A stretch of DNA of 57,014 nt, counting the filler, from Platydemus manokwari (Eukaryota): assembly GCA_037951405.1 (NCBI GenBank). It is 4 parts of 4 records of this genome, joined end to end, with 100 filler letters (N's around TTAATTAATTAA, not from the genome) between each part and the next. Parts side by side here need not be neighbours in the genome. Positions count along the whole stretch, not along the records: positions 8,939 to 27,689 come from JBBMOY010244449.1; 3 more parts are not named here. One strand, written 5' to 3'. Positions 937-27,689 of this stretch are shown in pieces. The notes beneath the pieces are model-generated. The model made no database searches. It was not told where the DNA came from and saw only the letters and a program-made list of their open reading frames with translations. The position numbers were made by a program, and so were the translations under genes. The stretch's first letter is position 1; each line of letters begins with the position of its first letter.

Positions 937-1882
937 GAAACCAATGAGATATCTTACCGATCTATATAAACTGCTTGGTCGATCACAATTTTCGATTTTG
1001 GCCTTTCACACTGTTGTCGGTAATCAGATAATTGTCAGATCGAGCTCAAATGAACTCGCCACAGCAATAACGGAGGCTATTTCAATCTTATTACCTCGCG
1101 GGTGTGTTAGTCAAGTATAAATTGACAAACATTCCAACCATCGTGATTATTATAAATCATCATTATCAGGGATACAGTGACGCCTCATACATGCAACTAT
1201 TCCAATATAATCTGCTTGGCCTGGATGTCAGTGTGCCACTCTCATCAGAGGTGACAAGTGTTGATGCCGCCCCGTGTGTTGTGTTGCTAATCAATTTGAT
1301 TTCATCTGACAACGAGATCATCTTCGACAAAAACGCTCATCTGACTCATGATAATGTTGGAGTTTTTTTCTTCATCTGCTCTCATATTTGTTTTCTGTTT
1401 ATATTTAGGTAACAATTAGAATTGATTCCAGTAAACCACCCGTTGTTTGTTCCTTAAACTCACCAATCTCAGTTCTAAATGCTCCCAGAATCATCGATCA
1501 GTACATTGAATTCATTGATAATCCTCTGAATTTATCTTGGAAAGTTGTATTGACGAATTTGGAAACCGTTCGAAATGAATGGCTCAACAAGGCCCAGCTT
1601 TATTTCGCATTCAAACGCAAACAAGTGATAAATATAACCATTAATATTTAGGCTGTAATGATATATCACCACTTCATTATCATTCAGGCAACTAATCGAT
1701 TAACCGATAATGAATGTGAACAGCGATTGCTCACATTTCTCAAAATAATCGGCATTCCTTCCGTTGCAGATCACGCTGTGGTGCGATATTGGGTGAGAGG
1801 AATGAGTGAGGAATCCAGGAAGAACATCACCTCATCTATGCAGATAGAATCGAAAAAAAGTGTCGAGACGATGTCATCGTGA
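937..1882 (+). CDS. FLCN: Folliculin, C-terminal DENN part (5'-partial); exons 937-1114, 1170-1355, 1409-1624, 1688-1882
   Basis: Three phase-0 GT-AG introns (55, 53, 63 nt) join four frames into ~257 aa. LLGRSQFSILAFHTVVGNQIIVRS, LLPRGCV, YNLLGL, APRIIDQY, RNEWLNKAQLYFAF and VVRYWVRGMS are colinear with folliculin motifs LAWHVLMGNQVIW, LPVGCV, NFLGL, EEWMNK and KFWMTGLS. Upstream exons were not located. Confidence 0.9.
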
Positions 1883-3299
1883 TTGATTGTCCAAAATGGA
1901 AAAGGGCTTTTTGATGTTTTGCGCTGTCACGTGTTTGATGAGTGGTTTGATATGTATTGAGTTGATATGCATGACTGTACCTGGTCGGGGGGAGGGGTGA
2001 GGCTTGACCAATGATAATTATTTCATATTATTCATCATGAACATCGATTATTTTTGAACACGTGATCTCGAGATTCGTGTCGTACACATAACATGTCGAT
2101 CAATATTCATTTATTGGTCATGATTTATTCACGTGATTTATATCTCATGTTGGCAACAAATATCCTTGATTTATTCTAATATCGATTATTATTAATCACT
2201 ACATTATTTATAACGCTAGCACCTAATTTTACGAAATTCATTCAACACATCGAAAACTTGATTCCGTGATTGAATAATATTGATAGACAAATCTCCATTC
2301 ATTTCACTACAAATATTTGAGTGCTCGTTATTCTTATCTTCTAATATTCGGATATCTGACAATTGTTGTTAAGCATAACGCTCGGATAAAATTGATTAAA
2401 ACAAATGATATATAATTAAGGAGAATCACTAATGGCGATTGTTATTTGATTAATTAAAAATCGATGAAAATTGAGAAGCTGTTTCTGTTGCTTGAATCAG
2501 TGTAATTAAATTGGGACAAATTTTATTGCTCATCACTATTTATTATTGATGGCCATATCGTTTTCATTAAACAACTCTTGTCCATGGGCAGAGCAGTGAT
2601 ATTTTTCCTCGAATATTTTAATTTATAAATAATGAAAGCCTTTTAAATCAAAATGGTGATAGTTAAATGAGTTAAATCAATAATTAAATGAGCTATTGTT
2701 GCTTTTGTAAATTATCATTGATTGAAGAAAGGAGAATTATTTTGCATTGAAGATAATAGATGTTAATATTTGATCGAAAATGAATATCGGGCTTAACGCA
2801 ATTGACTAATTAATGGTTTGTGTCTTGCACGGAGTGTATAGATTTCATCTAATTATTATTTAATCAGTTATTTCATTATTAATGTTTAATTTTAGCTTTA
2901 CTTCCTGTATTAGATTTTTTAAGGTCAAAATAACAAATGAGATGATCTACAATTTTATAAAACAATCAATCCAAATTATGAAAGAATTAAGTTAAATAAT
3001 ATTGATTCATTAAGAGATTATTGAGAAGCACATAAATCGTTCGCATGAGTTATCTTGTTACCATGAAATTATCATAAAGTATTTTATTAAATGAGGTTCC
3101 TCAAATTTCCCAACATTAAATTTTGTAATTCTGAGTAACATTTAACACAAAATTTACTCTTTTCTTTCCTCATCGTTAAATTTGCTCGACTTATGGTTAC
3201 CAAATAGTGTGTTATGTTTCAACCAGACATTTGATGATATTATGTGAAGGATTTATTATAATGAAAGTTATAGTTGAATTTCTTTGATGCGTAATAAAT

Positions 3300-3560
3300 T
3301 GAATTTTAACAGTAATAAGTTATTCGCTGGAATCCCTTGCTGACTGAGCATTCCATTTCCCTTATTCGTCTATCTGCATATTTCCTGTTCGTAAGCTAAT
3401 GAATATTTATACCATTTTTTGTTATTAACTTTTGGTTGGTTTGATTTATTTGTAATTGGTTTTTCATAATTTTCCATGTAACTATGCAAACTGGTTCATT
3501 TTTTGAGTGCTTGTATATATTGCTGTAATCATTCACTACAGACTAAGATTTAGAGAAACT
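3300..3560 (-). mobile_element. Decayed retroelement fragment, possibly Penelope-like RT/linker (copy 1)
   Basis: Shares the identical 32-mer ccatttcccttattcgtctatctgcatatttc (3353-3384) with 5488-5519. Minus strand reads KYADRRIREM amid stops. Confidence 0.35.
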
Positions 3561-5399
3561 AAAGTTCGATAGGAATATATTGATATAAAATATAAATTCA
3601 ATTATAGGTGGTTCTTACTGACAAGTATGAAAGTGATTCACATGAGCTATATATCGAATTATAAAAATATTGAAGTAAAGTAACGGTGAATTAGATTATT
3701 GATAAAACTTTCATTAGAGACAGACTGTTGAATTCAAATTTCCCTTAACATATCCTATTTTCTATCTAATAATAATTTTCTATCTTAATAATAAGTAATA
3801 TTAACCCAAAATATAATTATAAAATTAAATGATATTTAAACAAAATATAATTATATTACTATTAATTATGTGAAATTAAAAATAAAATATTTTTAAAGGA
3901 TTAAATCAAATATCAATAGAGCAAATGTGGGATTTGCAGATAATAATAGCAATTACCGACCATATTTGGTAATTGGAAAAAATGAATGGGTTCATGTTTT
4001 AGTAAGTATGAACAACAGGGTGAGGCAGAATTGATATGCACGGAGATAATAAGTATGTAAAGAGCGAGTTAACTCTTTATTTTCACCCATTCAACAAGAA
4101 AGCTTCAAGAGTAAGATATTATTTGTTGTTATCGTAGCTTGCCCTGCAACAATTGTAGTTATACGGGATTAAAAGTATTTTAGAAGTATTCTATTAGCAG
4201 TGGGCTAATCCGTATAGTAGAGAATTATTGTGTAATATTAGCTAGGAGAAGATTCTGAGCTAATTTATTGAGAATTTTGAGGATTTGTTCGATTGTGTGA
4301 ATGATGCATCCTCAACACTAGTTTGGAAGCAAAATATTATAATTCAAAATTGAAAAAGGAAATTAAATAGAAATAAATATATGAAAATCTGAAATCCAGC
4401 TGTACACTAGAAAAACGAAAATCTGAAATAAATAAAAAGGCCAAAAAATTAAATGTAATTAAAAGAAAAATAAATTTAAAATTTTTATACAAAAATTATT
4501 TTAAAATAAGATAATAGAACAAATAACTTGTTTTACCACAAACAAAATTCTTTTTGTTTATACGACCTCGCGTTCGTCAAGACAATTACCTGGGTCAATA
4601 AAAATTTTATTTCAAAACTAACTACGTCATTACTAAAAATAGTGTAGGTTGATTTATCAATATAAGTACCTTAAAACAGTCGGGTGTTGCTAAATTCAAG
4701 CATAACATCTTAAGAGTAACAACAGGGCAACAAATAAAACGCATAGATGACAAATTTGACCTACAAAATTACTGTATAAGGGCTAATGAATTCAGTTAGT
4801 TTGCACTTTTTTTTACGCGCTTAACTTACTTAGCCCTTGAGCTTATTACGAAGCTTTTATTTAAAGCATTATAAAGAATTATCATATTCCAAACAAAGAA
4901 TTATTGTTAGAAACAGAACTTGAAGATTTTCATTGCCAGTCATATTTCTATTCGAATTCAAAATGATAAGTAAATTTAATTTTTATTATCATGGACCACA
5001 GCTATTTCGATAGATGTATGGTTGTCTTAAAATCCCTAAGGTTCAAACTTGTTATCTCCCACTCTTTTTATCTACAGTGGTGTCTCATCATCACTACATT
5101 ATTAATCTACAGCTGTTTTATCGAGCTCTAATAATATTAAAATTTCGATTTCATTTAATTTATTATATAAAACCCCAACAATTTATAGCTAGTGAAAACA
5201 ACAAATTTTAGATACATAATAACATTATGCATTCAAAGTAATGATTAAGAATTACTATTTGAAACTTTGAAATCAAATCCTCAGTGTTTGCGCTTCAAAT
5301 CACAATTAAAAGAATAAAGTGAATTATCAATTCACGAATTCAGTGCCTAAAAGATCAGACAGCAACAGAAAGAACGACCATAAAACAATGGTCATCAGA

Positions 5400-8938: not shown

Positions 8939-8983
8939 AAGAAAAGTTGTGACAATCATTTAGTTAATCGACTCGTTAATGAA

Positions 8984-9532
8984 TTGTGGTCACAATTTAA
9001 CGATTCAAATAAATTGTATACTGATAGTGATGATAAATCTGAAAATCATTTGTTGTCATCTGATGAAATTTATGCTTTTCTCTGTAAACAAATGAAAAAT
9101 TCAAATATAATTGTCATCGATCCATTTTTTTCCACTGAAACTCTTGACGAGTGTGGAGATTTGATTTCATTAGGTTATAATCAACGCGATTATCGGAAAA
9201 TTGATTTGATTATCGTTCTTGTAAGTATCAGAAATCAACTTTGGACTCTATTTGTATATAATATTCAATCAAATACCTCTTATTTGTTGGATCCTTCACA
9301 ACAAGCTTTCCAACAAAATCATGTTCATGAAGCAGGAATGTAATTGACTGAAGAAATAAATAAATTCCGTGATGTCGGTGTTGTGAATTATTGCAACATT
9401 GATAACAACGCTGATAGAGTAAGACAGAATAGACGTGATGATTGGTGTGTAATTGTGTATGAATATGGTATTAATTTGAGTCAACAATTGACTTTCTCAA
9501 CTCCAATCGATATTGATCAGATGAGAAGATAG
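8984..9532 (+). pseudogene. Decayed Ulp1/SENP-like (peptidase C48) domain, probably transposon-derived
   Basis: Two ORFs in one frame separated by a single TAA (9341-9343). LSSDEIYAFL, IDLIIVLVSIRNQLWTLFVYN, SYLLDPS, RQNRRDDWCVIVYEY and IDIDQMRR match the C48 layout, with HW and DCG altered. Confidence 0.7.
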
Positions 9533-9903
9533 TTCAAAAATCCCGTGGTTCGTAAATAAATAAAACAACCAACAAGTAAAACAACCAAATAAAATATAAT
9601 GGAAACTGTAAATATTAATAAATGTGTTGATATAATGCTTGATTAAATATATTATTTTTCTGATAATCTTTTATAATCGTTATAATTAATCTCAATTTCT
9701 TTTCAATATCCAATTAAAATTTTATGTTTTTAATCTTAAATAAAATTAATAATAAGTAGTAGTTATTGCTTCAAGTAGTAGTTATCTTCTACAATTTTGT
9801 AAATCATCTTAAGCACACAATTGATTTTACGATATTATTAATAAATTATCTTTTAATTTTTATCGATTGATTTTTTGTAATTTTCCAATTGATATGAAAA
9901 TTT

Positions 9904-12900
9904 ATGTTTCACATTCAATTGTGGTTTATTATTAATATAATCATACAATTCATAATGAAGCTGTTTTACTGCCATGCCAATGTAAACTCGATAGCTCAAG
10001 GAATTAATGAGAAATGGATAATTAATATTTATCCATTATTTGGAAGTAATTGGACAATTAGCTGTATTCTCCCAATCGATTTCTCTGTGGATTATTTGAT
10101 AATGACAGGTCCTAACAATTTATTCCTCAAATATTGTGAACCAAACACAATTAGAAAATGCACAGAACAACGGATCAATGCTGATAGAGTATTTGTAAAC
10201 AATATGAAATCTATTCTTAACATTGAATTGAAAAACATTTCATTAATCGATTCTGGTTCCTATAACTGGACAATTTTCATTCTCAACAAAACTGTCATCA
10301 TTTATCAGCATAAATTAATGATCGTTAGAAAGTTACCCGCAATTATCCAATTCAAATCGACACCAATTAATGTTAGTAAATTATATGAAGGTGAAACGTT
10401 GAATTTATTTTGTGAGGTTGATGCCGGGCATTTAGCTGACTTTTCGACTCTTTACATTCATAACAGTAAATTTGCTGAGACACGTTTTCTAGAGTTTTTT
10501 AATCATTCAACGATACCAATGAAAACCACAGTTATTAGTCAATTAAATGGATCATTTGAATTGATCGAGGGCGATTCTCTCGTTGAATGTAATTCTGTGA
10601 ATAAGTTTGGTGATAAGGCATTTCAGAGAGTTTGGTTTGCCGTATTAATTGTTGATAAAATAACCAGTGGCTCAGATTTGTTGGTGTACTGCTTTAGTGA
10701 TTTCCAATCCATGTATCAACAGCAATTTCGATTTTCCAATGAGACATGCTGGAAAGATACACAACGAATATATTATCAAGGAATCTATGAAAGATCTTAT
10801 CATGTTCGTTTCTTCACTTTGAGAGCGAGAAATATCATAACAAGTTATAGCGGTAGATATCAATGCACAATATTATTCTGTTCAACTTATAACTCAACTT
10901 GTACAGAATTGAAAAGTTGCAGTCGAATGGTTGTCGTATTTCGATCCATGGACCTCACATCCTGTAATATCAAGGATCCAGCAGAGGCTGGAAAGCCATC
11001 TTGGTTTATTGTCAGTGCATTTCCTGGGGAATTTTATTTTCGATCGTATGTACGAATATTTCTACACGACATACCCGAAACATGGCGATTTCAGCCTCCT
11101 ATGGAAGGTCTATACAAAGTAAATTCAACAAATTTATTTGCTAATGTCACCTTTGTGCTCCCATCTGAGCCAGCAACTTTCTCTTCAGTAAACATTTGTT
11201 GCATCCTTATCAACAATGACAACATCCCTCCGTCCATTTCCAAATGTTTACTGAAACCTATTATTCATCTAATGAAAGGTTCTCTGGGTACTGTACCATC
11301 TATTTCTTTAAATGAAAGAATAAAAATCAATTCCACTATCGAATGCAAAGGCGTGACGGGTATTCCCTCACCTGTCTATAAATGGACCCGTATATCCAAA
11401 TCAATAGTGCCTTATCAAGATAGTCCAATACCAGATCTTGTTTCAAGAAATGAATGGCTGTTTGTAGATGATCGTCTAGATATACGAGGAAATATTTATA
11501 AGTACCGCTGTTCTGTCTACCAGTCAGGAAAAAGTCTCCATATCGATATACAATTTGTGATTAGTTTGTGTTCTCATGAACCTCTGATAGATTTAAATCT
11601 AGCACTAAACACACAGGTACACACGATCTGTGGAATTGACAACAAACCAGGCACTGAATTCTTCGTAATTTCATATAAGCCTTTCCTGAAGAGATTAATT
11701 CTATCATTGCCAGTTACCCCTCGAAAAACCCGCATCAGTTTTGTACCTTTCCTTAACTACGAATCGCGACACAATGCTACTTTTTTACCACTTGAAAATT
11801 CCTTGATTGCCAGTCAGATCGCTAAATTACTGGATCAGTTTTCAACTCAGTACCTATCTCCAACATCTAGGCCATGTGATGGGATGCAATTATCCTGCTC
11901 AGGAAAGGGATTTCAAAATCTGTACAATGTAAGATCAAGTGTGCGATCAAAGATTCCTTCTGTTGCTATACTTGGACGTGATGCATCTGCTTGTATAGAT
12001 AACGATCAAGACAGAGCAGATATGAGTTTATATCCAAGCCAACTCAATAAATCTGGAATTCAGGTTTGGCTTCATTATTTTAGTAAAGATATTTCTCTTC
12101 TTTTAGAGGAAGAGAAACTAATTCAACCAACAAAAACTTTCATATTAGTTAAAAAACCAATGGAGAGTAATCCGAACGACTTTTGTTGTGACATGTCAGA
12201 CTTTCCACTTTCCTATTCAATTGATGGCCGGGATTTTTTTCAAAGTATATGTGCATCATCTTCAGTATCTCAAGATCCTTTACAAAATCCTACTCTTATA
12301 ATTGACCCACCTCTACTCTATCGAGGTTTAGATATAATCATTAAATGTTCTGGAAATCCAGGATTTCCCAATGGCACTCTTTATTTCTGTTTAGTTGTAA
12401 ATGTAAATAGTAATTGTCTTATTCCAATCAACGTAACATCATCAACTATAATTAAAAAAGTGACACATATCGAAAGCAAAATCAAATTAGAATCATTTTA
12501 CGAAAACTGGTATATCCTGTGTACCGCCACGAATGACGTACAAACAGCTGGCTATGATCGCCCATTCATAAGCTCATTCCAAATTACATATCTGTCTAAA
12601 CTAATTAGTTTTGTCTTCATAAACATCGTTACAGATTCATTAATAGAAGGACGTTCAATTGAATTCAATTGTTCATTCAATCTTCCAATTCCTCCACCTC
12701 TATTGACAATTTCTCTTAAAAAATATGGATTCCAAGATTTAGAGAGAATATTATATTCGCAATACATTTATCCTAACTTAACGAATAAATCCGTTCTCGA
12801 CCAACAGCTAAAGCTACAATATGTGACAGTTGAGGTGTTTAATATATCCAATGAATGGGATGAATCCACCGTAATTTGTGCTCTAACAAACGACGCAGAA

Positions 12901-15900
12901 CAAATGGCAGCTGAAAAATCGATTTTGATCGAGTGGACTTTAGTTAGACAACCTTCATTAACATTCTTGACTGGACCTAATTACGATATGCGAGGCGTTA
13001 CCATCAATACTGGTGTGCCTTTACAGGCAGAATTTTGGATTGTAGCGAATTGTTCGGGCAAAGTTGGAAATGGAAATAATTCTCTCAATCTCTTTGTAAA
13101 TAAATCGTCTAATTCAATATGGATCATCAATGATCATGACGAATGCCATTTACGTTTTTCTATACCGACAGAGTCTGATAAATATAAATGTTCAGAAATC
13201 AGACAAATAACTAGGAATGAGGATTTTAGAGAGATTTTGTTTTCTATTGCAAAAATATCTCCTGAAGATGATTGGATAAACTTCACTTGCCGAGGTAATA
13301 ATTCTTTGAACTATCTCTCACAATCGATCTCATTCAAAGTATTGCTGGAGGCCCGAATCAATTGGTTTAATTTAATTACCTTCAATAAAATTTGTTGCAA
13401 TGTTTCAGGAAATCCAATTCCTGATGTTCAGCTTAAGGTTTTGTTGGGCTCACCTGAAAATCTTGTGAATATTCTAGAAAATCTTAAACCATTTTATACA
13501 TATGAAAAAAATACCGTTGCTGTTTGCATAGAAGTACCCACATTCGTTATAGGGTTGGTTCTCGTTAGATGCAGCACTAGTAACATGATAAATGATAAAC
13601 GACAAAATGTGTTTTATGATCAGTCCTTTGTGTTTCTAGATAAGAATAATAGAGAATCAGATCTCAAGATAACCCCTACAATAGTCAGGTCAGATGACTC
13701 CGCTCAGTTTAGTTGTTCTCTTAGTGTGGATCTCTATTTTTCCATCAATTATGTTATTATTTACCTACTTGTTCAAACCTTGATCAGTAGAATGCAAATG
13801 TTTCCCGTTGCTGCTAGACGAATACATGGATCTGAATTCTCTACATTAGGTTTGTGGGAAAACGTTTCTGTCGTCGATAACTTTATCAATTATTTAAATC
13901 CTAATACCTCTTGGAATGTCATAATTTTGCCCAATTCAAGGTTATTAAATGTGTAGTATTTTTATTTTTATAAATTTCTATGTGGTATAAAATTATTAAT
14001 GATATTACTAATATTAATATTATTGTTGGGTTTACCAAGCTATCAAGAACTAATTCAAAGCATAGTGTATATATAATCTGTATTAAAAGCCGATTCATTT
14101 TTTTTACTTTTCAAATCTTTTACATGACAGACAAAACAAAACCTACAACATGATGGATGATTACGCTTCAGTAATTCCATCCTTACCAAACAAATTATAA
14201 CATTTACATAAATATAGATAAAGATTCGACTTATACCTACCTATTGGTCATTTATATTGTTATTAACATTAGAAACACGACCATAAATATGATAGCATGA
14301 AAATATAAAGACAGAAAATGATAATAACATTTGTATTGTTTCAGATGGATCTCAGGATTATATCACTGTGCAGTCATATACGATGGTGGTTCCAGAGAAC
14401 TTACAACTCCTCCAAGAGAATTTAGAGTAACCGATAAACCGACTGGTCCAATTATCGTAATTAAAGTCAATAATAGTGAAATGAATCTTTTATATGAAGG
14501 GCAGAAATTTAGTGTCGTATGTTCTGTAAACGTTGGTCTGCCAGAAGAAAAAGGAGTCGCCATTTTAATACGTAATGATTCCCAAGTTCGTGAAGATCGT
14601 TATATTATAACAATCAATTCAGATAATACACAACAGATTTTCATTTCTAAATCTGAAATTGCCACAAGATCGATTCACCTTAATATATATTATAAATGTG
14701 TTGCTACAAATTTAATAGGTTCGATTGAAATCAAATCTAAACCTTTATTAATGTATTATTCTCCTTATCAAATAAGATTTAATCCAAGCGATAGACATGT
14801 GTTCCGAAATGATGAAAATATCGAATGCATCGCTATAGCTAATCCTCCGGCTAATATATTTTGGAAATTATTGATTGGTCCTCTAGGAATTCGATACAAA
14901 TACAGATTTGACCCACTCTATCAATTACATGGTAGTATTTTATTTTTGAACGGAATAAAATCTGGTTTATATTCATTCGAATGTGTTGCTGTTAATAAAA
15001 TCGGTCAAACCAAGAAAATTCTATCAATTTTTGTGACTTCATTTGATGATGCTAAAGACACTATGGAATACTATCCTTCATATCCAGTAATTGGGGGTTC
15101 GTTATCTCTAAAATGCTTGTCTATGCAAACTGATGAATCGTCATCTGATCTAGCAGAAATCTTATCGTCTATAATTTGGTTTAAGCTTGCCCCGTATTCC
15201 CAAGTTCAGATACCTTTGATATCATATAATTTCTTCACTGATACAATTAATTATTATGCGCCTAGAGAGCGATTTTTCATGAGAGGACCATTTAATTATT
15301 TTAGACTTGATATTTTAGATGTAAAACTTGCTGATTTTGGCACTTATGGATGTAAAGTAAAGCTAACTTCAAACTCAACAATAACCATGTTTACTGACAA
15401 AGAAGTTTGTATTCTTGACCCTCCTATCGCTCCGAAAATTATTTTCGACAGAGATGATAAATGTTTCAGGGAAGGCCATGTTTTGGATATTACATGTATC
15501 GGAGCATCGGGTCGATTAGTATGTGGTAAGGTTGTCCGTCGCTATTTAAATCTAATTTTGAATGTTGTGTATAAAGTAAAAGGTAGACAAAATCGTATTG
15601 TACGTTATCATTTGTACACCGTAAATGACACAGCGGATAAATCTTTATTCTTTTCCGGTATTCACCGATGGAAAAACCTGTCAATTGAACTAGATAATGC
15701 CGTCATATATTGTTCAACCGAAGGTCGTTTTCTTGATGAAAAAGCTGACTGGATATCGTGGTCAAGTCTAAATCAGCAATATTCTAGTAACTCATCTAAT
15801 CTAATTTCGTTTCAAATAATTATATGTATTCTGTTTACACCAAGATATATTCATATTGATCCACCACCTGATACGATATATCCTGGTACAAAACTTGTTT

Positions 15901-16475
15901 GTTCTGCTTTGGCTAATCCGGATCCTGTCGTTTATTGGGATACAGATGAAGGTTGGAATGGGCAGTCAGGAAATAGTACAGCCTTTGTTATAGTTCCTTC
16001 TAAAATAAGCCCTGGTGTATTTAATGCTAGATGTTCTGCAAGAAATACCATTGACGGTATTAATTACACAGCCAGTTCAAGTGTAGTTATTTCTATATTA
16101 CCTGAGGAAGAGAAACGATGGAATAGATTGATATTATTACTCATTGGAATTTGTGCTCTTATAGTATCGATATTTATCGGCTGTTGTGTGGGTATTAGAT
16201 TCTTTGGACCATTTCTCTCTTTCTTCTGTTGTATATCATACAAAGTTGATTTGGAGAAAGAATCAGAAGACACAGAAGTCTCTATACCGCCTATGTTTTA
16301 TGCACCAACATTGCCACAAGAGGAAATGTTGGAAATGCTCATTTACGATGAAGGAGATCAGAAAATCGATGATTGCATTGAGCCACCAGAAATCGAAGTT
16401 CCTCTTCATGAAGCCTTTCCGACATGGAACATTATAAAGAATAGAAGTTACGAATTTCCTGAATTACCAAAATAA
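9904..16475 (+). CDS. Large type I transmembrane Ig-superfamily protein (~2055 aa; ~14-15 Ig-like domains plus one vWA-like domain); exons 9904-13940 and 14345-16475
   Basis: Phase-2 intron 13941-14344 (AG|GTTATT...TTTCAG|A) fuses the 1350-aa and 714-aa ORFs and restores an Ig F-strand (NSRWISGLYHC). Hydrophobic N-terminus, repeated EG...C and (D)SGxYxC motifs, TM helix LILLLIGICALIVSIFIGCCVGI, acidic cytoplasmic tail. Confidence 0.88.
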
Positions 16476-17127
16476 TGTTTCCGTTAAGTAGAAGTTAACA
16501 AGTTTTTGGAAAAGGTAAATTTGATTATTTCACTTCTCTGGTCAACTATTTCTTGTCTATCTATTCAGGCTAACTGGCCAAGGAAAACAATACTATGGTA
16601 TTTCGCATCATTGATAAAATCAGAACTAATGATACTCAACGGAAAATAGGCATCAACATTGACTTGAGTGACAACGAAGCAACTTTTATCTCAATCCAAG
16701 TTTTTAATTGTCTCATTCTTATTTTTAGCTATATCGTCAGACTAGCACGTAACTAGTACGAATATGCTATAATACCATTGGATAACAATTACCTGCCCCA
16801 GTATCTAAGAATTCCCTCTTGTCATTCAATAATAAAAACAAAGTATTTAACAGAACTGTTTTGTGTGATCCAAATTTATTACCGAGTTTCATTTTTCAAT
16901 AAATATTATCATTAAGAGTTATTGATTTACCAATCACACACAGATTTATTTATTAATTAATGGCATTAGATAGTGGTCAAAGCTATACTATTGGTTAGCC
17001 AATCAGTATGGACTAACATATCACACAAGATCATGGCAGACATTACATATGATTGAAAATATTGTTACTCGATATATGTGAAAAAAAGATCTTAAAAAAT
17101 TTAATTTGTAAACAATGTTTGAACAAT

Positions 17128-17856
17128 TTATTTCTTTGTAGTGTCCACACCCTCTGTAAATCTGTGAGCAACATCGTCCCAATTAATTATTCTCCATAGC
17201 GCTTTAAGATAATCAGGTCGGACATTCTTATATTGAAGATAGTAAGCATGTTCCCAAACATCTATTCCTAATAATGGTTTCAATCCTGTTGTTGCTTCCA
17301 ATGGATCTTGATTTGCGCATGTCGCAATTTGTAATCTCCCATTTTTCTTGTTCAATCCCAACCAGGCCCAGCCTGAACCCTGTATGCCCGCGGCAGCTGC
17401 TGTTATATCACTTTTAAAGTTATCAAATGAGCCAAATTCCCTTTGCAAGGCAGCCATTAGAGATCCATCGGGTTCATTGCCACCCTTTGGAGAGAGATTT
17501 TTCCAAAATATTGAATGATTAATATGTCCACCGCCATTAAATCTGAGAGCATTCTAAATTATTGAGTTGTGGGATTTCGAAAAAATCTATTTAAAATTTA
17601 CTTGTAAAGATATTATTTTTGTGGTATCATTTTTATTAATTGCTTCATTAAGTTGCTCTTCAGCAATATTTAAATTATTAACATATGCAGCATGATGCTT
17701 CTTATGATGTAGTTCCATTATTTCACCAGATATCGTTGGTTCTAATGCTCCATAATCATAAGGTAGATCCGGTAGTGTATGCTTTGAACATGATGTAAAT
17801 AAATAAATACGAGAACTTTTAAATAACAGAGTAGGCAAAACTTTCGTTTTTAGCAT
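17128..17856 (-). CDS. SOD2: Mitochondrial manganese superoxide dismutase, 226 aa; exons 17856-17602 and 17553-17128
   Basis: Basic N-terminal transit peptide; [46 protein letters not shown]; 48-nt phase-0 GT-AG intron (17554-17601). Confidence 0.98.
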
Positions 17857-19019
17857 TTTTGAATGTAAATATATAAAATATTTTACAAAATAGAATATTC
17901 AAACATCTAATGTCAATAAATATTTCTTTTCTCAATATTCAAAATGATTTTAAAAATTTTATTTGAAAATATCAGAAAATTATCTTTTAAAAAACCTTGA
18001 ATCTTCAAAAATTTATTAATTTCCATTGTTAATTTCATATTTAAGGTTTTACGTTCATTTAATAAAGTTTAATTTAAAGTCGCTATTTTAATAAGTTAAG
18101 TTTAAAGTCAATTGCACGTAGGTTTAAAATAAATGAATTCCAATATAATATTACACTAAGTTATTTTATCAAAAACCCCATCTAAAAGCTACAATTTCTA
18201 AGGTAAATCTAAATAAAATACTTTAAAAAAATAATAAAGAAACGATTCATTAACAAAGGAAAGGGTTTCAAAAAAAAATCCATGGACAAAGAAATAAAAA
18301 AAGATCAACTCATCGAAAACCTTGAAATGTATATGGTAAATATTAAGACAAATAACTGGAATTTCAACTCCGAAATAAGAACAAAGGCAAGTTCAATGAA
18401 AGAAATAACAAAGCCAAAATTACATAAATAGCAAATTAATCGCACTAAAAGATAGCAAAAACTTGGTAAGAAAATCAACATTGTATTATAAATTTCTGAT
18501 TGATAATTTGGACAATATTTTGTGTACTCATTCAATCAAGAATATTTTTTACTATTTCATTTTGATTAGATCTATCTAATTAAGTTATTTAAAACAAAAT
18601 TTTTGCGGTATAAGTTTCACGAATAAATGCAAGTATATTTGCATTTGTAAAATCAAAGTTATTCAAAACGGTTTCAACGATTTGAGGAGTTATTTTAAAA
18701 TCAATTTATTTAAATAAAGTAAGGCATCTCTTCCGACTTCTTTAATATATAAAAACGTTCTTTCTAGAGATTCATAGCTTTCATCAGCTAAGAATCATTC
18801 AACCTTAATTAGTGTAAGGAAAGCAATATTTATTTTAATTTCTTATTGAAAATGAGGATTTCAAAGTGCCAAGAGAAGTTATATTCGAGAAAATCCTCAA
18901 TACTCTACAAAACAAGTAACTTATTTTGGTTTATTATTACTATGTTATAGTTTTCAGAATTGTTTGCCTTGAATAAATATCTGGTTTCAAAGAAATTAAG
19001 TAAAAAATTGGTGATATTC

Positions 19020-20620
19020 CTCAACTGTGTCTATCTTTTTCATTGAAATTTGAGTGCAGGAGCCTTAAATAAAAAATTATAGTAGTATGTATAGTCAGTA
19101 TTCGACTGCGTGATTCCCAAATAGGGTTTATTCAATTTTACTTGTTTTTATGATAATGGACAACAAATAAATATTCACAAAATTTTGTAAATCTTTTATA
19201 AGTTGGTTTTGTATTTTGTTTTCTTGATTTATTTGAATTTGTAAACAGTTTTATATTTTCATTTTTCTAGTATTCTCCATAGTTTTATCAAAGAAAGTAT
19301 TATTCATTAACTTCCAAATAAAATTGGAGACTACTATAATGTACGACAGAATGTTTTTTATCTGTTAGATCAAAAACTATTAAGTCTGATAAATTTATTT
19401 TATTTTCTTCAATTTCATGTTTTTGTTTTTCACTAAACATATTAATATTTACTTTCTTTTTCTATGAAGCTAATGGAAAATCTTTAGTTAATTCTTTATA
19501 TTCATCAGTATATTCAAGACCAACATCTAAAATCAATCTGTCTTTAGAATCTTCTTTAATTGGAGCAATGTAATTTTCAAAAACATTTAAATTAAGATTA
19601 TAATAACAAAGAGTTTTTTCAGAAACCCATATAAAGTCATTATAAGGTAAAGATTCTGACATTGCGCGACCATATTGATTATTTGAATCTATATAGAATG
19701 AATAGTTTGGTTTAAGCTACTCAGAGAAATCTAAACCTTTTATTTTTGTTTATCCTGCTTCTCAGAATTGAGCTAATAAATTTTAAAACTCGAATAAATT
19801 AAAAGAACTTCGTTCAAACGGAATTTCATGGGAGTAACTCAGACTCGGACGTAGTCCGGCTTGTGGCATTCGTCTGACCTTCGGGTAGGAACTACGTTCA
19901 ACTGGATTTCTGGTGGTGCATTCAATCTCTTATGTCTATGGGCATGAAATTGTTTTATTAATAAATCTGTTTCGAATTTATCTAGAATTCTATAATATTT
20001 ATATCCGTCATTTGTATACTTATTATTAGCTTTTCATGACGTCTTCCCATTACAGACGATATTTCTCTCATTATTCCTTCTTCTAATATTTCATATATTG
20101 TTTGGCCTTTAAGTAGTTTTAATTTTAAATTTGTAACTTTTAATCCTGACTTCCATGTTAATGATGGAGATGAAACATAATGAGGAGGATCTAGGTTTCC
20201 TTGGTTTTTATAGTTAGTTCTAAATGACTCTATTTTATCTGCTAACATCCTTTCTTAAATATATTATGGTGTAATCCCATAAAGTTTTACATCGAAATTT
20301 ATGCCAGATATCTTGAGCTCTAAAATATTTTTTATCGGATATTCCTTTAAAATTTTGATAAGAGTAAAATACAACAATAGGTGGTAATTCTGTTTCTTCT
20401 AACACATTAAAAGAAAAAATATTTTCATAGGGATAAACACATTTAGTTTTCAAAACTAGGAATTTTTTTTAGCCCTTAAAAAAGAATTTTTTTACCAATA
20501 AGCTTTTACAGTTGAACTTATTTTAAATGTTTTGAATTCTTTGAGTTTCTTCTTTACTTAAGTTACTTAGATAACTTTAGCCTGTTAAAACATTTACAGA
20601 TAAAGAATCTACTGTTATAT
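19020..20620 (-). mobile_element. Decayed protein-primed family B DNA polymerase of a Polinton/Maverick or adintovirus-like element
   Basis: Motifs in order across frameshifts and stops: KCVYPYE, DYTIIYLRKDV, LDPPHYVSSPSLTW, EGIMREISSVMGRRHEKANNKY, YIDSNNQYGRAMS (motif A), KLMNNTFFDKTMEN (motif B), VKLNKP. Confidence 0.85.
19805..19910. repeat. Cluster of mini-hairpins bounded by a ~22-bp imperfect direct repeat
   Basis: GAAC-TTC-GTTC 19805-19815, CGGAC-GTA-GTCCG 19846-19858, ACC-TTCG-GGT 19877-19886, GAAC-TAC-GTTC 19889-19899. Direct repeat 19805-19827 vs 19889-19910. Confidence 0.8.
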
Positions 20621-21349
20621 TTCCTAATTCAGATATGCTCAAGTCAGTTTCTTAACTCTCATTAAATCAAAATCTAATTGAACTGGAAAATACCTAATTA
20701 CTTGAGTTAAATTTGCTTCTGTTATTTGGATTATTTCAATCTTTAAAGTTAGAGGGAATCTTGATTTTAATGTTGTGAATTCTGATTCTTCGGTATTTGG
20801 ATTATTTTTTATAGTAATACTTTTACAATAATTTGATATTTAATATTGATATATTTATTTATAAAATATGATATATAGATTCTTATTCTTCACAAATATG
20901 GCTACATATATCTTTATTTGGTATAGTTTTCTTTTTAAAAGTAATAGTTTTATAAATATGTGACATAGAATTTCTGCCTTTCTTTATTGTAGAAGTACTT
21001 CGCTCCTCTGTATTATTGTTATTAATAGGTTTTATCGTGATTTCTTAAACCTTGTATATTTACAAAACACTTGTTACAAATTTTACACTTTTTTTAGTTC
21101 ATTTGTTAAGCGTACTATTTTAGAGTAATTTTCTTTTATTGGTTGTTAGCTTAAAAGAGATGATTTAAATAAATTGGGTTGAATTGTCTTTTATAAAGAT
21201 TTTTGTATTTTTTTGTTGAAAAAATAACGAAATCATTGATTTTTGCTTTATCAATATATTAAATGAAAAAAATGTAAATCATTAACAAATTAAATAATTT
21301 AGAAGACATTGATGTTTTAATTTATAATCGAATCAATATATAGGATAGA

Positions 21350-21870
21350 AAATAATATAGTGGAGCGATATGGTTTCCCAAGATGTGAGTTTTCATAAGA
21401 AAAAACAGATATTATTTTGAAGGGTCTGAGGAGTATCATGGATGTCAAAAAGCTTGCTTTGGCTTAAACTGACCTTTTGCGGTCGAGAGTTGTCGTGAAG
21501 GAAATAGAATTTTTCAAAAAAATGTTTCCACACAACCTGAATCGCATTTACTAATTTATCCTACTGAATTCAGTAAATTTCTGCGTTTATGTTTTTCTTT
21601 GTGAAGTACATCACAGAAGAATCCTTGCCAGATCCCAAAAAAAGTAAAAATGTGCTTTTGTGATGACAAACATAAACAAATTGATGTTGTATCAAGATAT
21701 GTCCTGATAAGATCGATTGGCACTGTTTCAATATATATACACTTAATCCACCGTTGTAAGTTGAGATAGAAAGTCCTTCTGTTTTTGGTTGGTAAAACAA
21801 TTCACCCATATTTTTCATCGGTTGGCTTTATTTTCATCTGACAAAAATGTAATAACCATCACAAGGATTA
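21350..21870 (-). mobile_element. Decayed Tc1/mariner transposase fragment
   Basis: Minus strand FLSDE, KKNINAEIY and FYFLHDNSRPQ (mariner FLHDNARPH-like, ~21478-21510), with stops. Confidence 0.65.
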
Positions 21871-23864
21871 TTTTCTAAATTTATGCAAGTGTCGGGGTAC
21901 TAATGTGTCAGACAACAGGGAATTTTTCAGTGTTAATTATAAAAATTTTGCACATATTTCCCTTGTTTTTCCTATTATAAGTGTTATCCTGAACATAATA
22001 TGTAGCGTCTTTTTTACTTGTTAGGAAGAATAAGTGGTCGACCGAATATAAGCGGTAGTAAATATAAATACTATATAAATGAAAACTATAAATACGCAAA
22101 TATTATGCATGCATTTATATTAATAAATATCAATATTTAAATCAATATTAAATCAATATTTCAAATTTTCACAGACTTTTAAATAAATATAATTTTCTAA
22201 CCATAAATGGCTAAATCCAGAAAAAGTTACACCATAGGAAATACTCATATATATATATATATATATATAAATTTTTTGTTAGTATTGGTAATCTCCTACC
22301 TAAATTCTTTCAGATTTTTCTGACGGACAATATTATTCACGCAATGTGTGATTTTTAAATTCATAACTGGTTTCTGCTGTAAATCTTTTAAAGTATAATC
22401 AAAATCAAGTGTCACTCATCCTTTAGAACAGGTGGAATATGTAATTTTCCAGTTTATATGTCTTACCTGATAATTTGCTGATAATTTCTATACACTTTTA
22501 TGCTCGTTATTATTGTGTATTCTTTTGGTGTTCCTTTAACTGATAATCCAATCAAATAATATCGTGGTTGTTATCTAACTTTTAGTAATCTATTTAGTTG
22601 TTTAATTAGTGGTGTATGCCTCATTCTAGATTTTGTCCCGCATTCGTTCAGTATCATTGGTCAATACTATTATCCATTTATTCGGATTATGTACTGATTC
22701 TTACATTTTCGCCCCGTCAAAGTTTTTTAATTTTTCTTGAAAACTTTTATTAAATTGTTTCTGGAATGTCTTTGTCAGTTTGTAGATTTTTTGATTAGTT
22801 TTACTACTTTTGGATCTGCATTTCAATTGCCACAATCAACAAGTTCTTGATCAGCGGGGTATTTTCTAACTTTCTTGAAATTTTTTGTTATATGATCGAT
22901 TCAATTTTATTGTAATGCATTTTTTATGTTTGGATTCAATAGTCAATCTTTCACAATTTTAAATTATGTTTTTTATGCTTTTTGGTTATAATAGCTCTTC
23001 TTAATTGATCTTCACCTTTGCATTTAGCTGTCTGGAATTATAGGTGATATAAAGGTTATAGTTAAATTATTATTTCGTAATTCAGAAATAAAATTGAAAT
23101 ATTTAAATAAACTGTATTCTTATTTTCCGCATTTTAAAATAAAAGTTGGAAATCATATGTGGATTTATATGTACATTGGAAATATCCTAGATATAATCAT
23201 ATAATGTCTTTTGTTATAATAAATGAATTTAATTACCATAATATATGGAACATCTGTACTTGCAAAGCATTCACAAAAGTTATTTTTACACAATTATCTT
23301 GATTATATTTTGAATCAATCTTGTGTCGAGACAAACTATTCATTTGTTATCTGACTCTAAATAAGTGGACAAATATTACCGAAAAAAAATTTTTCTAACA
23401 AATTTCAATTTTCATTTTATCTGATAATGCAAGGACCACAAATTTTAGTTAATGTTTAGTTAACACGCAAAGCATCTGCTCCAGTTCTGCGATACTGGCT
23501 GTTTACTATCGTAATTACTTCTCCGTTAACCGTTATCAGAACAAGCTAACAAATATACCACATCATATTGTATCATTATCATTTATTGTAAAGTTTGAAA
23601 GCCTTCTTGATTTATTTTGACAGTCATTATAGTGGCTAAAGTCAATCAGATTTGCAATAATTTGATTTTTTATATTCATGGGATTTTTAAACTTTGTTAC
23701 GTTTAAATATATTTATTATATCTTCAAGACAAGTCTTAGATTATATTGAAATTAAAATTTATTTTAATATACAACTAAATAACTAAAGCTATCTGAACAT
23801 TATCGATATTCCAGTAATCAATAAAATTGTTACAATATCCATAAATTGCGATTTAATAATTTTT

Positions 23865-24764
23865 TCACAAATTAGTATTTGATATCATTGGATAAACTTT
23901 ACGAAATACTTCCCTCTGTCGACATAAGTATGAAAACATATTCATGTAAAATCGTTTGTATTTATTCCTGATTCCTTTCATCAATGCCAAAAACACAATC
24001 GGGTGAATAACCGTATTCATTGTTGTTAAAATCAATCCAATCTTTGAAGTGAACGGTGAACTAATTGGCTTTATTATTTTCATTTTAAACAATAAGGAAT
24101 AAAAATTATCATAGGCATAGAAAATGAGAAAAAAACAAGTGATAATAAATGCAGAAATTGTAAACTTGTTTCGCATTGAGGCATTCTTACCAGGATGTTT
24201 CAGGTGTTTTAGAATTTTGATAATTTTACTGTAAATATAAATGAAAAGTAATGCAGGGAGTAAATATGAAATGATAAAATAGATATATGAATACATCATA
24301 GAATACGTAAAATTTGGTATTCCAATATATAGACAGGTGTTGTTCTTGTAAGATCTTTGAATTATCGTTGGGATTGCGCAAATAGAAGAGGCTGACCATA
24401 CATAAATGTATGAGAATATGAAAAGGGCTTTGGCTTTTTCTTAATAAACCAAAGCTTTTACAATTGCCATATATTGGTCAATGGCAGTACAGACAAGATT
24501 GTGAATGGACATTTGAACCAGATGATAGTATATCCAGTTTGAGTTCCAAATATAGCAAGCGATTAGATGTCCATTGTTACTTCGAATAACATTGACTAAC
24601 AGATTAACCAAGCATAAAAGTGTATCAATTGTAGATTGATGAATCATTAAATTCGATGTAAGTCGCGATTCTAAAGGATAAGAGAACAATACAATTCCAA
24701 AGGATAAATTGAAAAAACAGGCTAGGGAGAGTATCACTACTTGCAGCAGAACAAAATAATTCAT
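23865..24764 (-). pseudogene. Intronless rhodopsin-family (class A) GPCR with one in-frame TAA at 24441-24443
   Basis: The two ORFs are in the same frame and the 141 nt between them are open (TM4 and ECL2 Cys). Seven hydrophobic segments: LMIHQSTID, AIDQYMAIV (DRY-like), YLLPA...YSKI, FLIFYAYD, TMNTVIHPIVF (NPxxY-like). Confidence 0.85.
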
Positions 24765-26029
24765 GGAAAATGTAATTTGTTTCAATGAGTCCCTCTAACT
24801 ATAAATACTTCTCATAAGATCTTAGTGGTTAAAATGCTGTTTAGATTATTTCTATAAATATCTATACAAATTATTTCTATTAAACTATAAATATAAAATG
24901 AATTTGTATCAAGTTTTGCTAAAATAATTTGTAAGAATTTTCTTTTAAATTTTATTTACTTATATAGTTTAAATTTATAATCCATATCATCTGTTCTGTG
25001 AGCAACATAAATGATAAATGCTAGGATTAATTCTAGTTATTAGGATATTTCAATATGGCGACGCATCTATACAGGTGACGACAAAGCAAAATTTATTTCT
25101 TCAGTAAAGACATAAAAATCAAATCCATAATCGTGTAATTTAATGTACGCACACAAGATCAGTTTGAAATTATCGAGATTAAATTTATGTAGAATTAAAC
25201 TAACTAGCTTGTTAAGTAATGTCAAGCAAAAGACTTTTGTATAATATACAGGATATTGAAAAATTTGATAATGGATTTGCAAGTACTTAAAATGAACTTT
25301 TAATAATTTAATCCTGGGAAAAATTAAAAAAAAACTTATAATATTACTGTAATATTAAATATAAAAAAAATAAGAATTTTAAATCTTAGTTTTGGATTTC
25401 ATGCCTCTTTTTAACCACTACTTTCACTGTTGCTAAGTTCTCTGAAATCGGATGCAAGATAATTGACTTCTCAAAAATATTAATGATTATATATTTTACG
25501 ATTCTCGAGAAATCATAAATATTAAAAACAGAAACGCTGCAGTAATTCCGGATGTGCATAAGTTTGCTTAATTTCAAATAGAAATAAGCTATCCAGAGTT
25601 TTCGGAATTATAAATGTATATACGTGGAGAGAGAGAAAGAATTAATACATAAATACTATTGAGAAAATGCAATATGACATAAAGCTGATTATAATTAAAA
25701 AGAGCACAGATTTACGAGCGTATAATAACATTCCTTCTTTTACATTTATAGAAGAATAAGAGAAAATCATTATTTAAAATATTATTAAAACAAAAACAGT
25801 AATAAGAACATGACTTATATTATTTAAGAATAATAAAAGCTTTTGTCTCCATAAATACATGATGACGACATGCTGACCTAATCATTAATTATATAAAAAT
25901 AAGATATATTAAATTTAGAAACATTGTGTTAAAAAGGACAACAGGATTGTAGATTATTACCAAGTTCTGTTAATAAATATAAGAATAAGTATTGAAGGTA
26001 GACTTGTAAAAGCGTATAAAAATCGAAAT

Positions 26030-26102
26030 GTTATTCATAAAGTTATAAAGTTATTCCTAAAGTTATAAAGTTATTCATAAAGTTATAAAGTTATTCATAA
26101 AG
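26030..26102. repeat. 20-bp minisatellite (gttattcataaagttataaa), ~3.5 copies
   Basis: Direct reading. Confidence 0.9.
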
Positions 26103-26791
26103 AATACTTTAATATAACAATAAATTTTTAAAGGGGTTTACCAAAACGAATAGATATCTGTTGAATAGAATTTATAAAACAACTGATTGTTTTTAATTTC
26201 TACATTTTGATGGATGAGTATCTTATTTAGTATAAAAAAATAAAATTACAAGAAGCTATTTTTAATAGTATTGGATCGATATAAATCGGGACATTTCCAG
26301 TTTATGAAAACATTAAATAATATTTGAAAAATCGATGCGAATAAAAATATAAAAGAATTACTAAAGAATTTCATTTAGATTCAATGTTATATATTTTCTA
26401 TCATTATTCCCTATTCTTTTTTAGTGACATTAAAATGACCTGGGAATTTTGTATCATGAAAATTATATTGCACAGAAAAATATTGATAAATAGTTTTTTT
26501 TCTTTTGTTTATATAATTGATTGAAAAATAATCTTGAATAAATTAGGTTATTACTTTGATAGTTGAAATCATCAAAATGAAAAATTGAAATGAAACGTCA
26601 GATAAATAAGTAACACAAATTATTGGATAAAAACTTTAAGACCAAATAATAATTCAACACTTTTATTTTACTTTATGGGTTTTTTCGAAAAATGTACAAT
26701 AAAATCTGCAAATTTTCAAAGACAGTATTATCTGCATATCTTAAATTAATATTAGAATGATTTGGATTTTAGAGCATAATAGTTATGATAA

Positions 26792-27262
26792 AGAAATATA
26801 ACAGCAAGAAATGTGAATCACTATTGATTTATGTATTTGTATTATCGAAGAACAAAATAATCTTCACCAGCTTGATCGTGAAGTACACATTGTTTTCTAT
26901 ATTTTTCAGAAAACGAAATACATTTTAAGTAGCTGAAATATAGTTTTCGGCGTTAAATATTCGATCGAAAATGTGTTTCCATAAGATTGGCTACATTTTT
27001 ATAATCTTTAATCTATCCACCAAAATGATCTTAAATAGTTTCATCAATTATTAGAACTGTATCGAAAAATATACAAGTCATTAAATTTGATTTGATAAAC
27101 TCATATCCAAATACATGGACATATTTTATATAACAGAAATATAACAACAAGAAACACGATCAACGAAAGTGAATTATTATTGATATTTTATTTGTATTAT
27201 TGAACTTAAAATTCTCTACCAGCTTGATCGTGAAAAACACTTTGATTTCATCACTTTTCAGA
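26792..27262. repeat. Diverged ~120-bp direct repeat pair (about 26792-26911 and 27134-27262)
   Basis: Shared blocks agaaatataaca(g/a)caagaaa, tatttgtattat, accagcttgatcgtgaa and ttttcagaa in the same order. Confidence 0.7.
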
Positions 27263-27562
27263 ACCGTATTGAAAAATACACAAATCGTTGGATTCAATTT
27301 GAGAAATTCATATCCTTATACATTGACTTCACAGATATTTATTGAATCTAATTCATTAGGTTATGAAACAACTACGGTCATTGAACAACCATAGTTAACG
27401 GAGAATGAAAGCATTTTAATTTGTTGTGCACTAATTTAATGTAGTGGCACATATCAGGAATAACAGTAATAGAAGAAACATGATCGCGAACTACAATCCA
27501 CCATTTAATAATGGATTTTCTTGACTAAGGCAACATAAATCTAAAATGTTTTAAAAATTGTA

Positions 27563-27689
27563 TTGGGTCTATAACTTAAAAACCGGAATTTTTTAGAACA
27601 ATTGAGTGTTTTTTAAAGAAAATCTTGTACAATTCTGTTATCCAAAGTAATGTCCATCGGAAGTTACAACATTTCCCCATCTTTCGGGC
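27563..27689 (-). mobile_element. 3' end of a mariner transposon cut by the gap
   Basis: Minus strand PERWGNVVTSDGHYFG* is a mariner transposase C-terminus. TA|TTGGGTCTATAACTTAAAAACCGG is a TIR-like end at 27561-27590. Confidence 0.85.

Follow-up and report, generated by a model that had tools for sequence, protein, structure and literature searches.

A putative type I receptor of the immunoglobulin superfamily with a VWA-like module set between two Ig arrays, from the Platydemus manokwari assembly

Introduction

Several described animal proteins bring together Ig and VWA domains, or string many Ig domains on a single membrane anchor. Hemicentin (fibulin-6; HIM-4; bioRxiv 10.1101/2021.11.24.469833) is a secreted protein with an N-terminal VWA domain and C-terminal TSP1, G2F, EGF and fibulin modules. 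Receptors of the Kirrel/Neph, MCAM, BCAM and CD22/sialoadhesin type are type I membrane proteins with an ectodomain made of Ig modules only (5-17 in number), one transmembrane helix and a short non-enzymatic tail. In DSCAM, contactin, L1 and nephrin the Ig modules are followed by FN3 domains, and neither of these two groups has a VWA domain. The anthrax toxin receptor (ANTXR) family has a basic plan of a VWA domain, an Ig-like domain and a single transmembrane helix. Here, we analyse a gene that fits none of these plans as they stand. It lies on the plus strand at positions 9904-16475 of a 57,014-nucleotide stretch of DNA (the window, in which all positions are counted), which was joined from four parts of the Platydemus manokwari assembly GCA_037951405.1, filler included. 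The part that carries the gene comes from contig JBBMOY010244449.1.

Weighing all the evidence, we favour reading the predicted product as a lineage-specific variant of the adhesion or recognition receptors of the immunoglobulin superfamily (IgSF), a type I protein with 15 Ig-like modules and a VWA-like insert. In what follows, we present the evidence for the modules, the membrane anchor and the gene model, the search for relatives and the surroundings of the gene. We then weigh the alternatives and set the protein beside the described systems.

Order of the predicted modules

The spliced product has 2,055 amino acids. Its parts follow one another as a signal-like start, five Ig-like modules, a non-Ig module of about 234 residues, ten more Ig-like modules, a transmembrane helix and a 92-residue acidic tail with prolines and tyrosines (table 1). 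A first-pass annotation of the same DNA had proposed about five Ig-like domains ahead of a central module and about ten behind it, a single transmembrane helix with juxtamembrane cysteines, and an acidic Pro/Tyr tail of about 80 residues lacking an enzyme domain. The order has held up, with 12 of the 15 modules supported by profile comparison and those of exon 2 by Pfam and PDB matches. The helix is there as a hydrophobic 23-mer accompanied by CC pairs, and the tail, measured at 92 residues, belongs to no family in a Pfam search. The splice proposed at the same time (9904-13940 joined to 14345-16475) agrees at the sequence level with a GT..AG intron and an exact frame join.

The Ig-like modules

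The product opens with a hydrophobic core of 13 residues, LWFIINIIIQFIM, followed by ...CHA/NV. In our parse, the ectodomain then divides into 5 + 10 Ig-like modules of 96-136 residues each. A pair of cysteines lies 44-79 residues apart in 13 of the 15, in contexts like those of the Ig B and F strands, and the 37 N-x-S/T sites of the protein would suit an ectodomain.

Exon 2 is readily placed in the superfamily. Its Pfam matches lie above the cut-off (given in brackets) for Ig_3 at 34.5 bits (30), I-set at 28.2 bits (23.7) and Ig_2 at 27.4 bits (27); V-set scores 24.5 bits, and by these curated Ig-fold profiles the exon belongs to the immunoglobulin superfamily. Among PDB sequences, the best matches are DSCAM (7.5e-07), contactin-2 (3.5e-05), neurotrimin and Robo1, with modules 12-13 matching DSCAM and contactin-2, and ESM features score 0.94-0.95 to IgSF adhesion proteins (Kirrel, MCAM, BCAM and CD22-type). 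Exon 1 is far more divergent: its Pfam Ig matches (Ig_3 and ig, at modules 5 and 2) are all sub-threshold, and its PDB match is to titin with E = 0.14.

Each module was also compared by hhalign with an Ig profile made from 45 Ig_3 pieces of the same assembly and set against 25 of its own shuffles. Twelve of the 15 scored higher than all of their shuffles (z = 2.8 to 8.3), with the B strand or the F strand in correct register: modules 2, 3, 5, 6, 7 and 9, the first part of module 10, and modules 11-15. The two halves of the central module and the transmembrane helix with the tail, which served as negative controls, stayed at z < 1. Moreover, BLASTP aligns module 6 with the Pfam-supported module 11 (29% over 78 residues, E = 2e-4), and module 2 with the same module (E = 1e-3). 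Of the profile methods, hhalign alone was sensitive enough: a hidden Markov model of the five best Ig modules missed the remaining modules as well as Ig genes elsewhere, and in an hmmsearch with the 45-row Ig profile the scores did not rise above those of decoys. At the level of profile comparison, these results demonstrate an Ig identity for most of the modules. No two modules exceed about 30% identity across a long stretch, so the array would be old and not the product of a recent tandem expansion.

The central module

The module between the two Ig arrays is, in our judgement, probably a VWA-like fold that has no metal ion-dependent adhesion site (MIDAS). In an ESM feature search with residues 540-800, the best rows shown were nearly all VWA clusters, at scores of 0.81-0.84, which is lead level only. 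More specific evidence comes from hhalign. Against a first profile, built from the assembly's own VWA domains, residues 670-722 align with VWA positions 88-136 (the ...ILGRDAS... strand and the helix-strand that follows) at a score of 21.0. None of 150 shuffles reaches this value (mean 12.5, maximum 18.7). A 44-row VWA profile gives two matches: residues 592-616 (KPFLKRLILSLPVTPRKTRISFVPF) with VWA positions 21-45, that is, helix alpha1 and strand beta2 (score 23.0), and residues 671-722 with positions 89-136 (score 19.4). The two are collinear and spaced by 79 residues (68 in the VWA profile). Together they score 42.4, a total that none of 200 shuffles attained (maximum 18.6), and no other 243-residue window of the protein scored above 14.7 against this profile. 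The probabilities that hhalign itself attaches to the VWA matches are 2-6%.

The MIDAS motif D-x-S-x-S does not occur where it would be expected, at the end of strand beta1. In the register extended back from residue 592 the sequence reads ICGIDNKPG, in which the aspartate is kept and both serines are replaced, and in an alternative register, LIDLNLALN, the serines are likewise missing. The vWA domain called in the first-pass annotation thus survives in part: collinear hhalign matches and VWA neighbours in ESM space are weak and concordant signs in its favour, while Pfam and PDB matches and the MIDAS serines are missing.

Membrane anchor and cytoplasmic tail

The transmembrane helix occupies residues 595-617 of exon 2. 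Pairs of cysteines lie within the helix and right after it, and these flanking cysteines are probably palmitoylated. The tail that follows contains 20 D/E, 7 K/R, 11 P and 4 Y.

The gene model

G+C amounts to about 29% in the part of the window that holds the gene, where stops would be expected in about 8% of random codons. Two open reading frames (ORFs) on the plus strand, 9904..13956 (1350 codons, with an ATG) and 14331..16475 (714 codons), depart strongly from this expectation: at the base frequencies of this part, a stop-free run has a chance of about 1e-49 for 1350 codons and about 1e-26 for 714. G+C is 0.30-0.41 within the frames and 0.18-0.28 outside and between them.

Splicing from 13940 to 14345 restores the frame exactly, with exon 1 ending in TCA AG and codon 1346 becoming AGA. 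The translation across the junction, ...NVIILPNS-R-WISGLYHC, takes an Ig E strand on into the Y-x-C motif of the F strand. In other words, the intron interrupts a single Ig module (module 10): the end of exon 1 supplies its first half (B strand AQFSCSLS, later NVIILPNS), and exon 2, which has neither an ATG nor a signal sequence of its own, opens on the GLYHC motif of the F strand. Beyond the stop codon, AATAAA hexamers occur at distances of 356 and 423 nt. A further intron inside module 10 (13724/13726 to 13787) was considered and rejected, as its 62 or 64 nt would break the frame.

A single public run was found to hold the stretch (run X1, a DNA run). Its genomic contigs match 10500-13291 and 13299-16499 without a difference, intron included; the run is probably the source sample, and its contigs are therefore not independent support. 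They are interrupted at 13291-13299, within exon 1, where the assembly is continuous; heterozygosity or low-complexity sequence may be the cause. This one DNA run, whose contigs hide variants, shows no variant letters.

The length of the first exon is not unusual for this DNA. An alpha2delta gene elsewhere in the assembly has 1003 residues within one exon, several Ig genes have open frames of 800-1700 residues, and in the AT-rich fraction introns are few and short in the few genes inspected. With few introns and very long exons in other AT-rich genes, a 4-kb exon is not odd here. As part of the explanation that we find best overall, the sequence would represent a two-exon, single-copy nuclear gene of an AT-rich animal, which we consider the probable case.

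Table 1. Predicted features of the Ig-VWA-Ig gene and its product (positions in the window; residues of the spliced product)
Feature	Position	Strand	Details
Exon 1	9904..13940	+	ATG ORF 9904..13956; residues 1-1345 plus two bases of codon 1346; GT donor 13941-13942
Intron	13941..14344	+	404 nt, GT..AG, phase 2, ends TTTCAG; G+C 0.22-0.28
Exon 2	14345..16475	+	Last base of codon 1346, residues 1347-2055, stop TAA 16473-16475; AG acceptor 14343-14344
Signal-peptide-like N-terminus	9904..9978	+	Residues 1-25, hydrophobic core LWFIINIIIQFIM; judged by eye from the translation
Ig-like modules 1-5	9979..11559	+	Residues 26-552; cysteine spacing; sub-threshold Pfam; modules 2, 3 and 5 beat all shuffles
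Putative VWA-like module without MIDAS motif	11560..12261	+	Residues 553-786, about 234 residues; ESM, hhalign
Ig-like modules 6-9 and first part of 10	12262..13940	+	Residues 787-1345; cysteine pairs 58-79 apart; modules 6, 7, 9 and 10 (first part) beat all shuffles
End of Ig-like module 10 and modules 11-15	14345..16109	+	Pfam, PDB and ESM matches; modules 11-15 beat all shuffles
Transmembrane helix	16128..16196	+	LILLLIGICALIVSIFIGCCVGI; Kyte-Doolittle 19-mer means up to 3.06
Predicted cytoplasmic tail	16197..16472	+	92 residues; hydrophobic juxtamembrane stretch with CC pair, then acidic segment containing Pro and Tyr
Candidate poly(A) signals	16831-16836, 16898-16903	+	Two AATAAA; read from sequence

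Relatives and copy number

The two exons were searched separately, both in protein databases and in the assembly itself (911 Mb in 1.99 million contigs, the part analysed here being window 8939-27689, contig C244449). For exon 1, a word search of 5.8 billion proteins gave no relative among candidates of 742-2362 residues, and a full HMMER search with residues 1-1200 gave none among 1.84 billion cluster representatives at E <= 1e-3. For exon 2, a word search gave no relative among candidates of 393-1250 residues, a range outside which a full-length ortholog would fall, and a search of JGI metagenome contigs gave none either. Neither exon has a second match in its own assembly at E <= 1. In the open-access literature, we found no Ig-VWA-Ig membrane protein of this order. 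The finding that the first-pass annotation had named as refuting, a full-length one-to-one ortholog of the same domain order in a characterised family, did not emerge from these searches, which cover exon 1 widely and exon 2 more narrowly.

This absence has to be read with care, because the lineage is almost unsampled, as a neighbouring housekeeping gene illustrates: an exon of a manganese superoxide dismutase (Mn-SOD) gene nearby finds a single match at 87% identity (a 907-bp metagenome contig), all others being at 72% or less, and its matches do not single out a phylum. Fast divergence together with thin sampling of the lineage is more likely to account for the lack of relatives than recent invention. 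The gene is, in addition, a single copy outside any paralog cluster, a mild argument against families of the allorecognition type (FuHC, Alr), which are marked by clustered paralogs and high allelic polymorphism.

Two contigs were tried as sources of related genes and set aside. C231117, which has a long ORF with a VWA match, encodes a calcium-channel alpha2delta subunit, and C458889, with an Ig ORF of 1205 residues, looks like an unrelated muscle-type Ig protein.

Neighbouring genes and composition of the assembly

Downstream of the Ig gene, and convergent with it at about 650 nt from stop to stop, lies the Mn-SOD gene (window 17128-17856, minus strand). It consists of two exons, the N-terminal one matching Pfam Sod_Fe_N at 4e-23 and the C-terminal one matching SOD, with a 59-nt GT..AG intron between them, which indicates that ordinary spliceosomal introns are in use here. 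Further along the minus strand (23865-24785), ORFs of 114 and 144 residues have weak 7tm_1 matches (E about 0.01, profile positions 18-93 and 152-259) and are probably a divergent two-exon G protein-coupled receptor of the rhodopsin type. At 19462-20453, also on the minus strand, three short ORFs without a Pfam match at E <= 0.1 resemble, by eye, pieces of a type B DNA polymerase of the organellar or viral kind found in Polinton/Maverick remnants. At the contig edge (8984-9343, plus strand), an ORF of 119 residues has no credible family (HSR, E = 0.06) and looks, by eye, like the decayed core of a Ulp/SENP-type peptidase of transposons.

Elsewhere in the assembly, the alpha2delta-like calcium-channel gene of C231117 (locus L033, positions 1258-4852) has a VWA domain whose MIDAS motif (DCSLS) is intact, a long C-terminal region and an extra ORF of 168 residues. 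In other AT-rich contigs (C1652625, C1106886, C603994 and others; loci L036-L038), VWA domains are arranged in tandem, and an intron interrupts each of them near profile position 62/63. This arrangement points to a multi-VWA matrix protein family of the same organism, collagen VI-like or matrilin-like.

The assembly as a whole is heterogeneous. AT-rich contigs (G+C 0.24-0.33) are several kilobases long, and there are many short contigs with G+C of 0.37-0.56. Contigs C1514745, C1389203, C1344449, C1440324 and C43481 (loci L045-L049) bear cox1, and at least four complete, distinct animal cox1 genes are present, mutually 64-87% identical. The copy on C1440324 has AAA for Asn and ATA for Ile, as in the flatworm/echinoderm mitochondrial code, and the remaining ones follow the general invertebrate code.

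Possible role and alternative readings

If the predicted architecture is right, the protein would be a type I IgSF glycoprotein: a signal peptide, five Ig domains, a MIDAS-less VWA-like alpha/beta module, ten Ig domains, a transmembrane helix and an acidic tail. Such a protein could serve as a long adhesion or recognition receptor. Its Ig string would hold a binding surface away from the cell, the VWA-like module might provide a metal-independent protein-binding site part-way along the Ig rod, and the short, non-catalytic tail may recruit cytoplasmic adaptors.

Several results weigh against this reading. For the central module, Pfam reports no VWA domain in residues 531-800 at E <= 10 (the only row there, SMP_MUG190-like at E = 0.024, is sub-threshold with 14.6 bits against a cut-off of 35), a PDB sequence search at E <= 10 finds no match, and a PF00092 scan of the whole assembly at E <= 0.01 does not list this contig. 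AlphaFold, run without an alignment, returns a predicted local distance difference test (pLDDT) score of 30.3 for residues 548-788 and 30.0 for residues 26-1225, and values of about 30 in both runs make a fold comparison impossible. In the hhalign test against the Ig profile, modules 1 and 4 fail and module 8 is borderline, so that these three are called Ig from their position, length and cysteine spacing only. Module 10 has a long inter-cysteine span of about 83 residues, where a small unrecognised intron is possible. Among the public runs checked, no RNA run contains the stretch, and the splice, the start and expression are predicted from the DNA. The several different cox1 genes indicate that the assembly is a mixture of more than one animal, and the contig is not tied to any of them; a flatworm source for it is possible. 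Finally, the proposed role is one read from the architecture.

How far these points favour other explanations differs from case to case. It is possible, though we hold it to be the less probable case, that the central 234 residues are unrelated to VWA domains (a lineage-specific spacer or some other fold), in which case the protein would be a receptor with a string of 15 Ig modules and an insert. The missing Pfam and PDB matches, the omission of the contig from the PF00092 scan, the low hhalign probabilities, the low pLDDT and the absent D-x-S-x-S all suit this view, as does the fact that shuffled proteins often reach ESM scores in the range of 0.81-0.84. What it does not account for are two independent hhalign matches whose order and spacing fit one VWA domain and which neither shuffles nor other parts of the protein equal, or the preponderance of VWA clusters among the best ESM neighbours shown; the central module, moreover, clearly fails the Ig profile. 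An error in the gene model is very improbable. It would mean two separate genes, the first encoding a secreted Ig protein of 1,350 residues that ends at the TAG at 13954-13956, or else an unexpressed relic. The lack of RNA would agree with this, and so would a stop that falls only 16 nt beyond the proposed donor. Yet a separate second gene would have neither an ATG nor a signal sequence and would begin midway through an Ig module, the first half of which, with the B-strand cysteine, ends exon 1, and the GT..AG intron joins the two frames exactly into 2,055 intact codons.

We also think it unlikely that the gene belongs to a parasite or symbiont and encodes a fast-evolving surface protein that acts at a host interface (attachment, immune evasion) and not as an endogenous cell-cell adhesion receptor. 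The multiple animal cox1 genes, the presence of long AT-rich contigs beside short GC-richer ones and the extreme orphan status of the protein make room for such an origin, but nothing ties this contig to a parasite, and the gene is single-copy while families at host interfaces are usually expanded. Having a housekeeping gene, Mn-SOD, as a neighbour is uninformative in this respect, either way. The prospect of an unseen class of IgSF receptor, with the MIDAS-less VWA-like module as a mid-rod ligand-binding or homophilic 'lock' for lineage-specific recognition (gamete, tissue-boundary or self/non-self), is similarly doubtful. The first-pass annotation had gone further than the evidence in seeing here a candidate for an undescribed system; the roles that it suggested, in self/non-self, gamete or junction recognition, are conjectural, and the gene is better regarded as putatively encoding one more lineage-specific IgSF surface protein of a poorly sampled, fast-evolving animal.

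Should the architecture of this putative IgSF adhesion or recognition receptor be right, the Ig-VWA-Ig single-pass plan would join the known designs of animal adhesion receptors and would offer a handle on cell recognition in a lineage barely covered by protein databases. The gene also illustrates clearly the extent to which Ig modules may diverge: of the ten modules in exon 1, Pfam fails to detect nine.

Comparison with described systems

Hemicentin resembles the predicted protein in being very large and extracellular and in joining one VWA-type domain to a long Ig string. The two differ in order and in anchorage. The VWA domain is N-terminal in hemicentin, whereas here the VWA-like module starts at residue 553, after five Ig-like modules; and hemicentin is secreted with an EGF/fibulin C-terminus, whereas here a transmembrane helix and a tail follow the Ig array and the Pfam search finds no EGF or fibulin module.

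The ANTXR family shares the combination of VWA, Ig-like domain and single membrane pass. ANTXR1/2 (TEM8/CMG2) carry a single MIDAS-bearing VWA domain at the N-terminus and a single Ig-like domain, and their cytoplasmic domain is long and conserved. In the present protein, by contrast, the VWA-like module is internal, its MIDAS serines are missing, it is flanked by 15 Ig-like modules, and the tail belongs to no Pfam family. PDB sequence searches revealed no similarity to ANTXR.

The likeness to DSCAM, contactin, L1 and nephrin consists in the best PDB matches of Ig modules 12-13. These proteins have FN3 domains after their Ig modules and no VWA domain, whereas no fn3 match appears in either exon here at E <= 1, and module 15, next to the membrane, fits the Ig profile at the place where the DSCAM, L1 and nephrin types have FN3. 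Kirrel/Neph, MCAM, BCAM and CD22/sialoadhesin provide the nearest ESM clusters of exon 2 (0.94-0.95) and are likewise type I proteins with one helix and a short, non-enzymatic tail. Their all-Ig ectodomain sets them apart from the predicted protein; we found no orthology between the two at the sequence level, and the tail motifs of these receptors (a PDZ ligand, an immunoreceptor tyrosine-based inhibitory motif) are not evident by eye in this tail.

Judged by its predicted domain content, then, the protein is not a hemicentin, not a member of the DSCAM/L1/nephrin type and not an ANTXR. The differences from hemicentin, DSCAM, L1 and nephrin that had been drawn at first sight are confirmed by the Pfam searches, which find no FN3, EGF or fibulin domain, and by the order of the modules and the transmembrane helix, which place a VWA-like module inside the Ig rod of a putative single-pass receptor.

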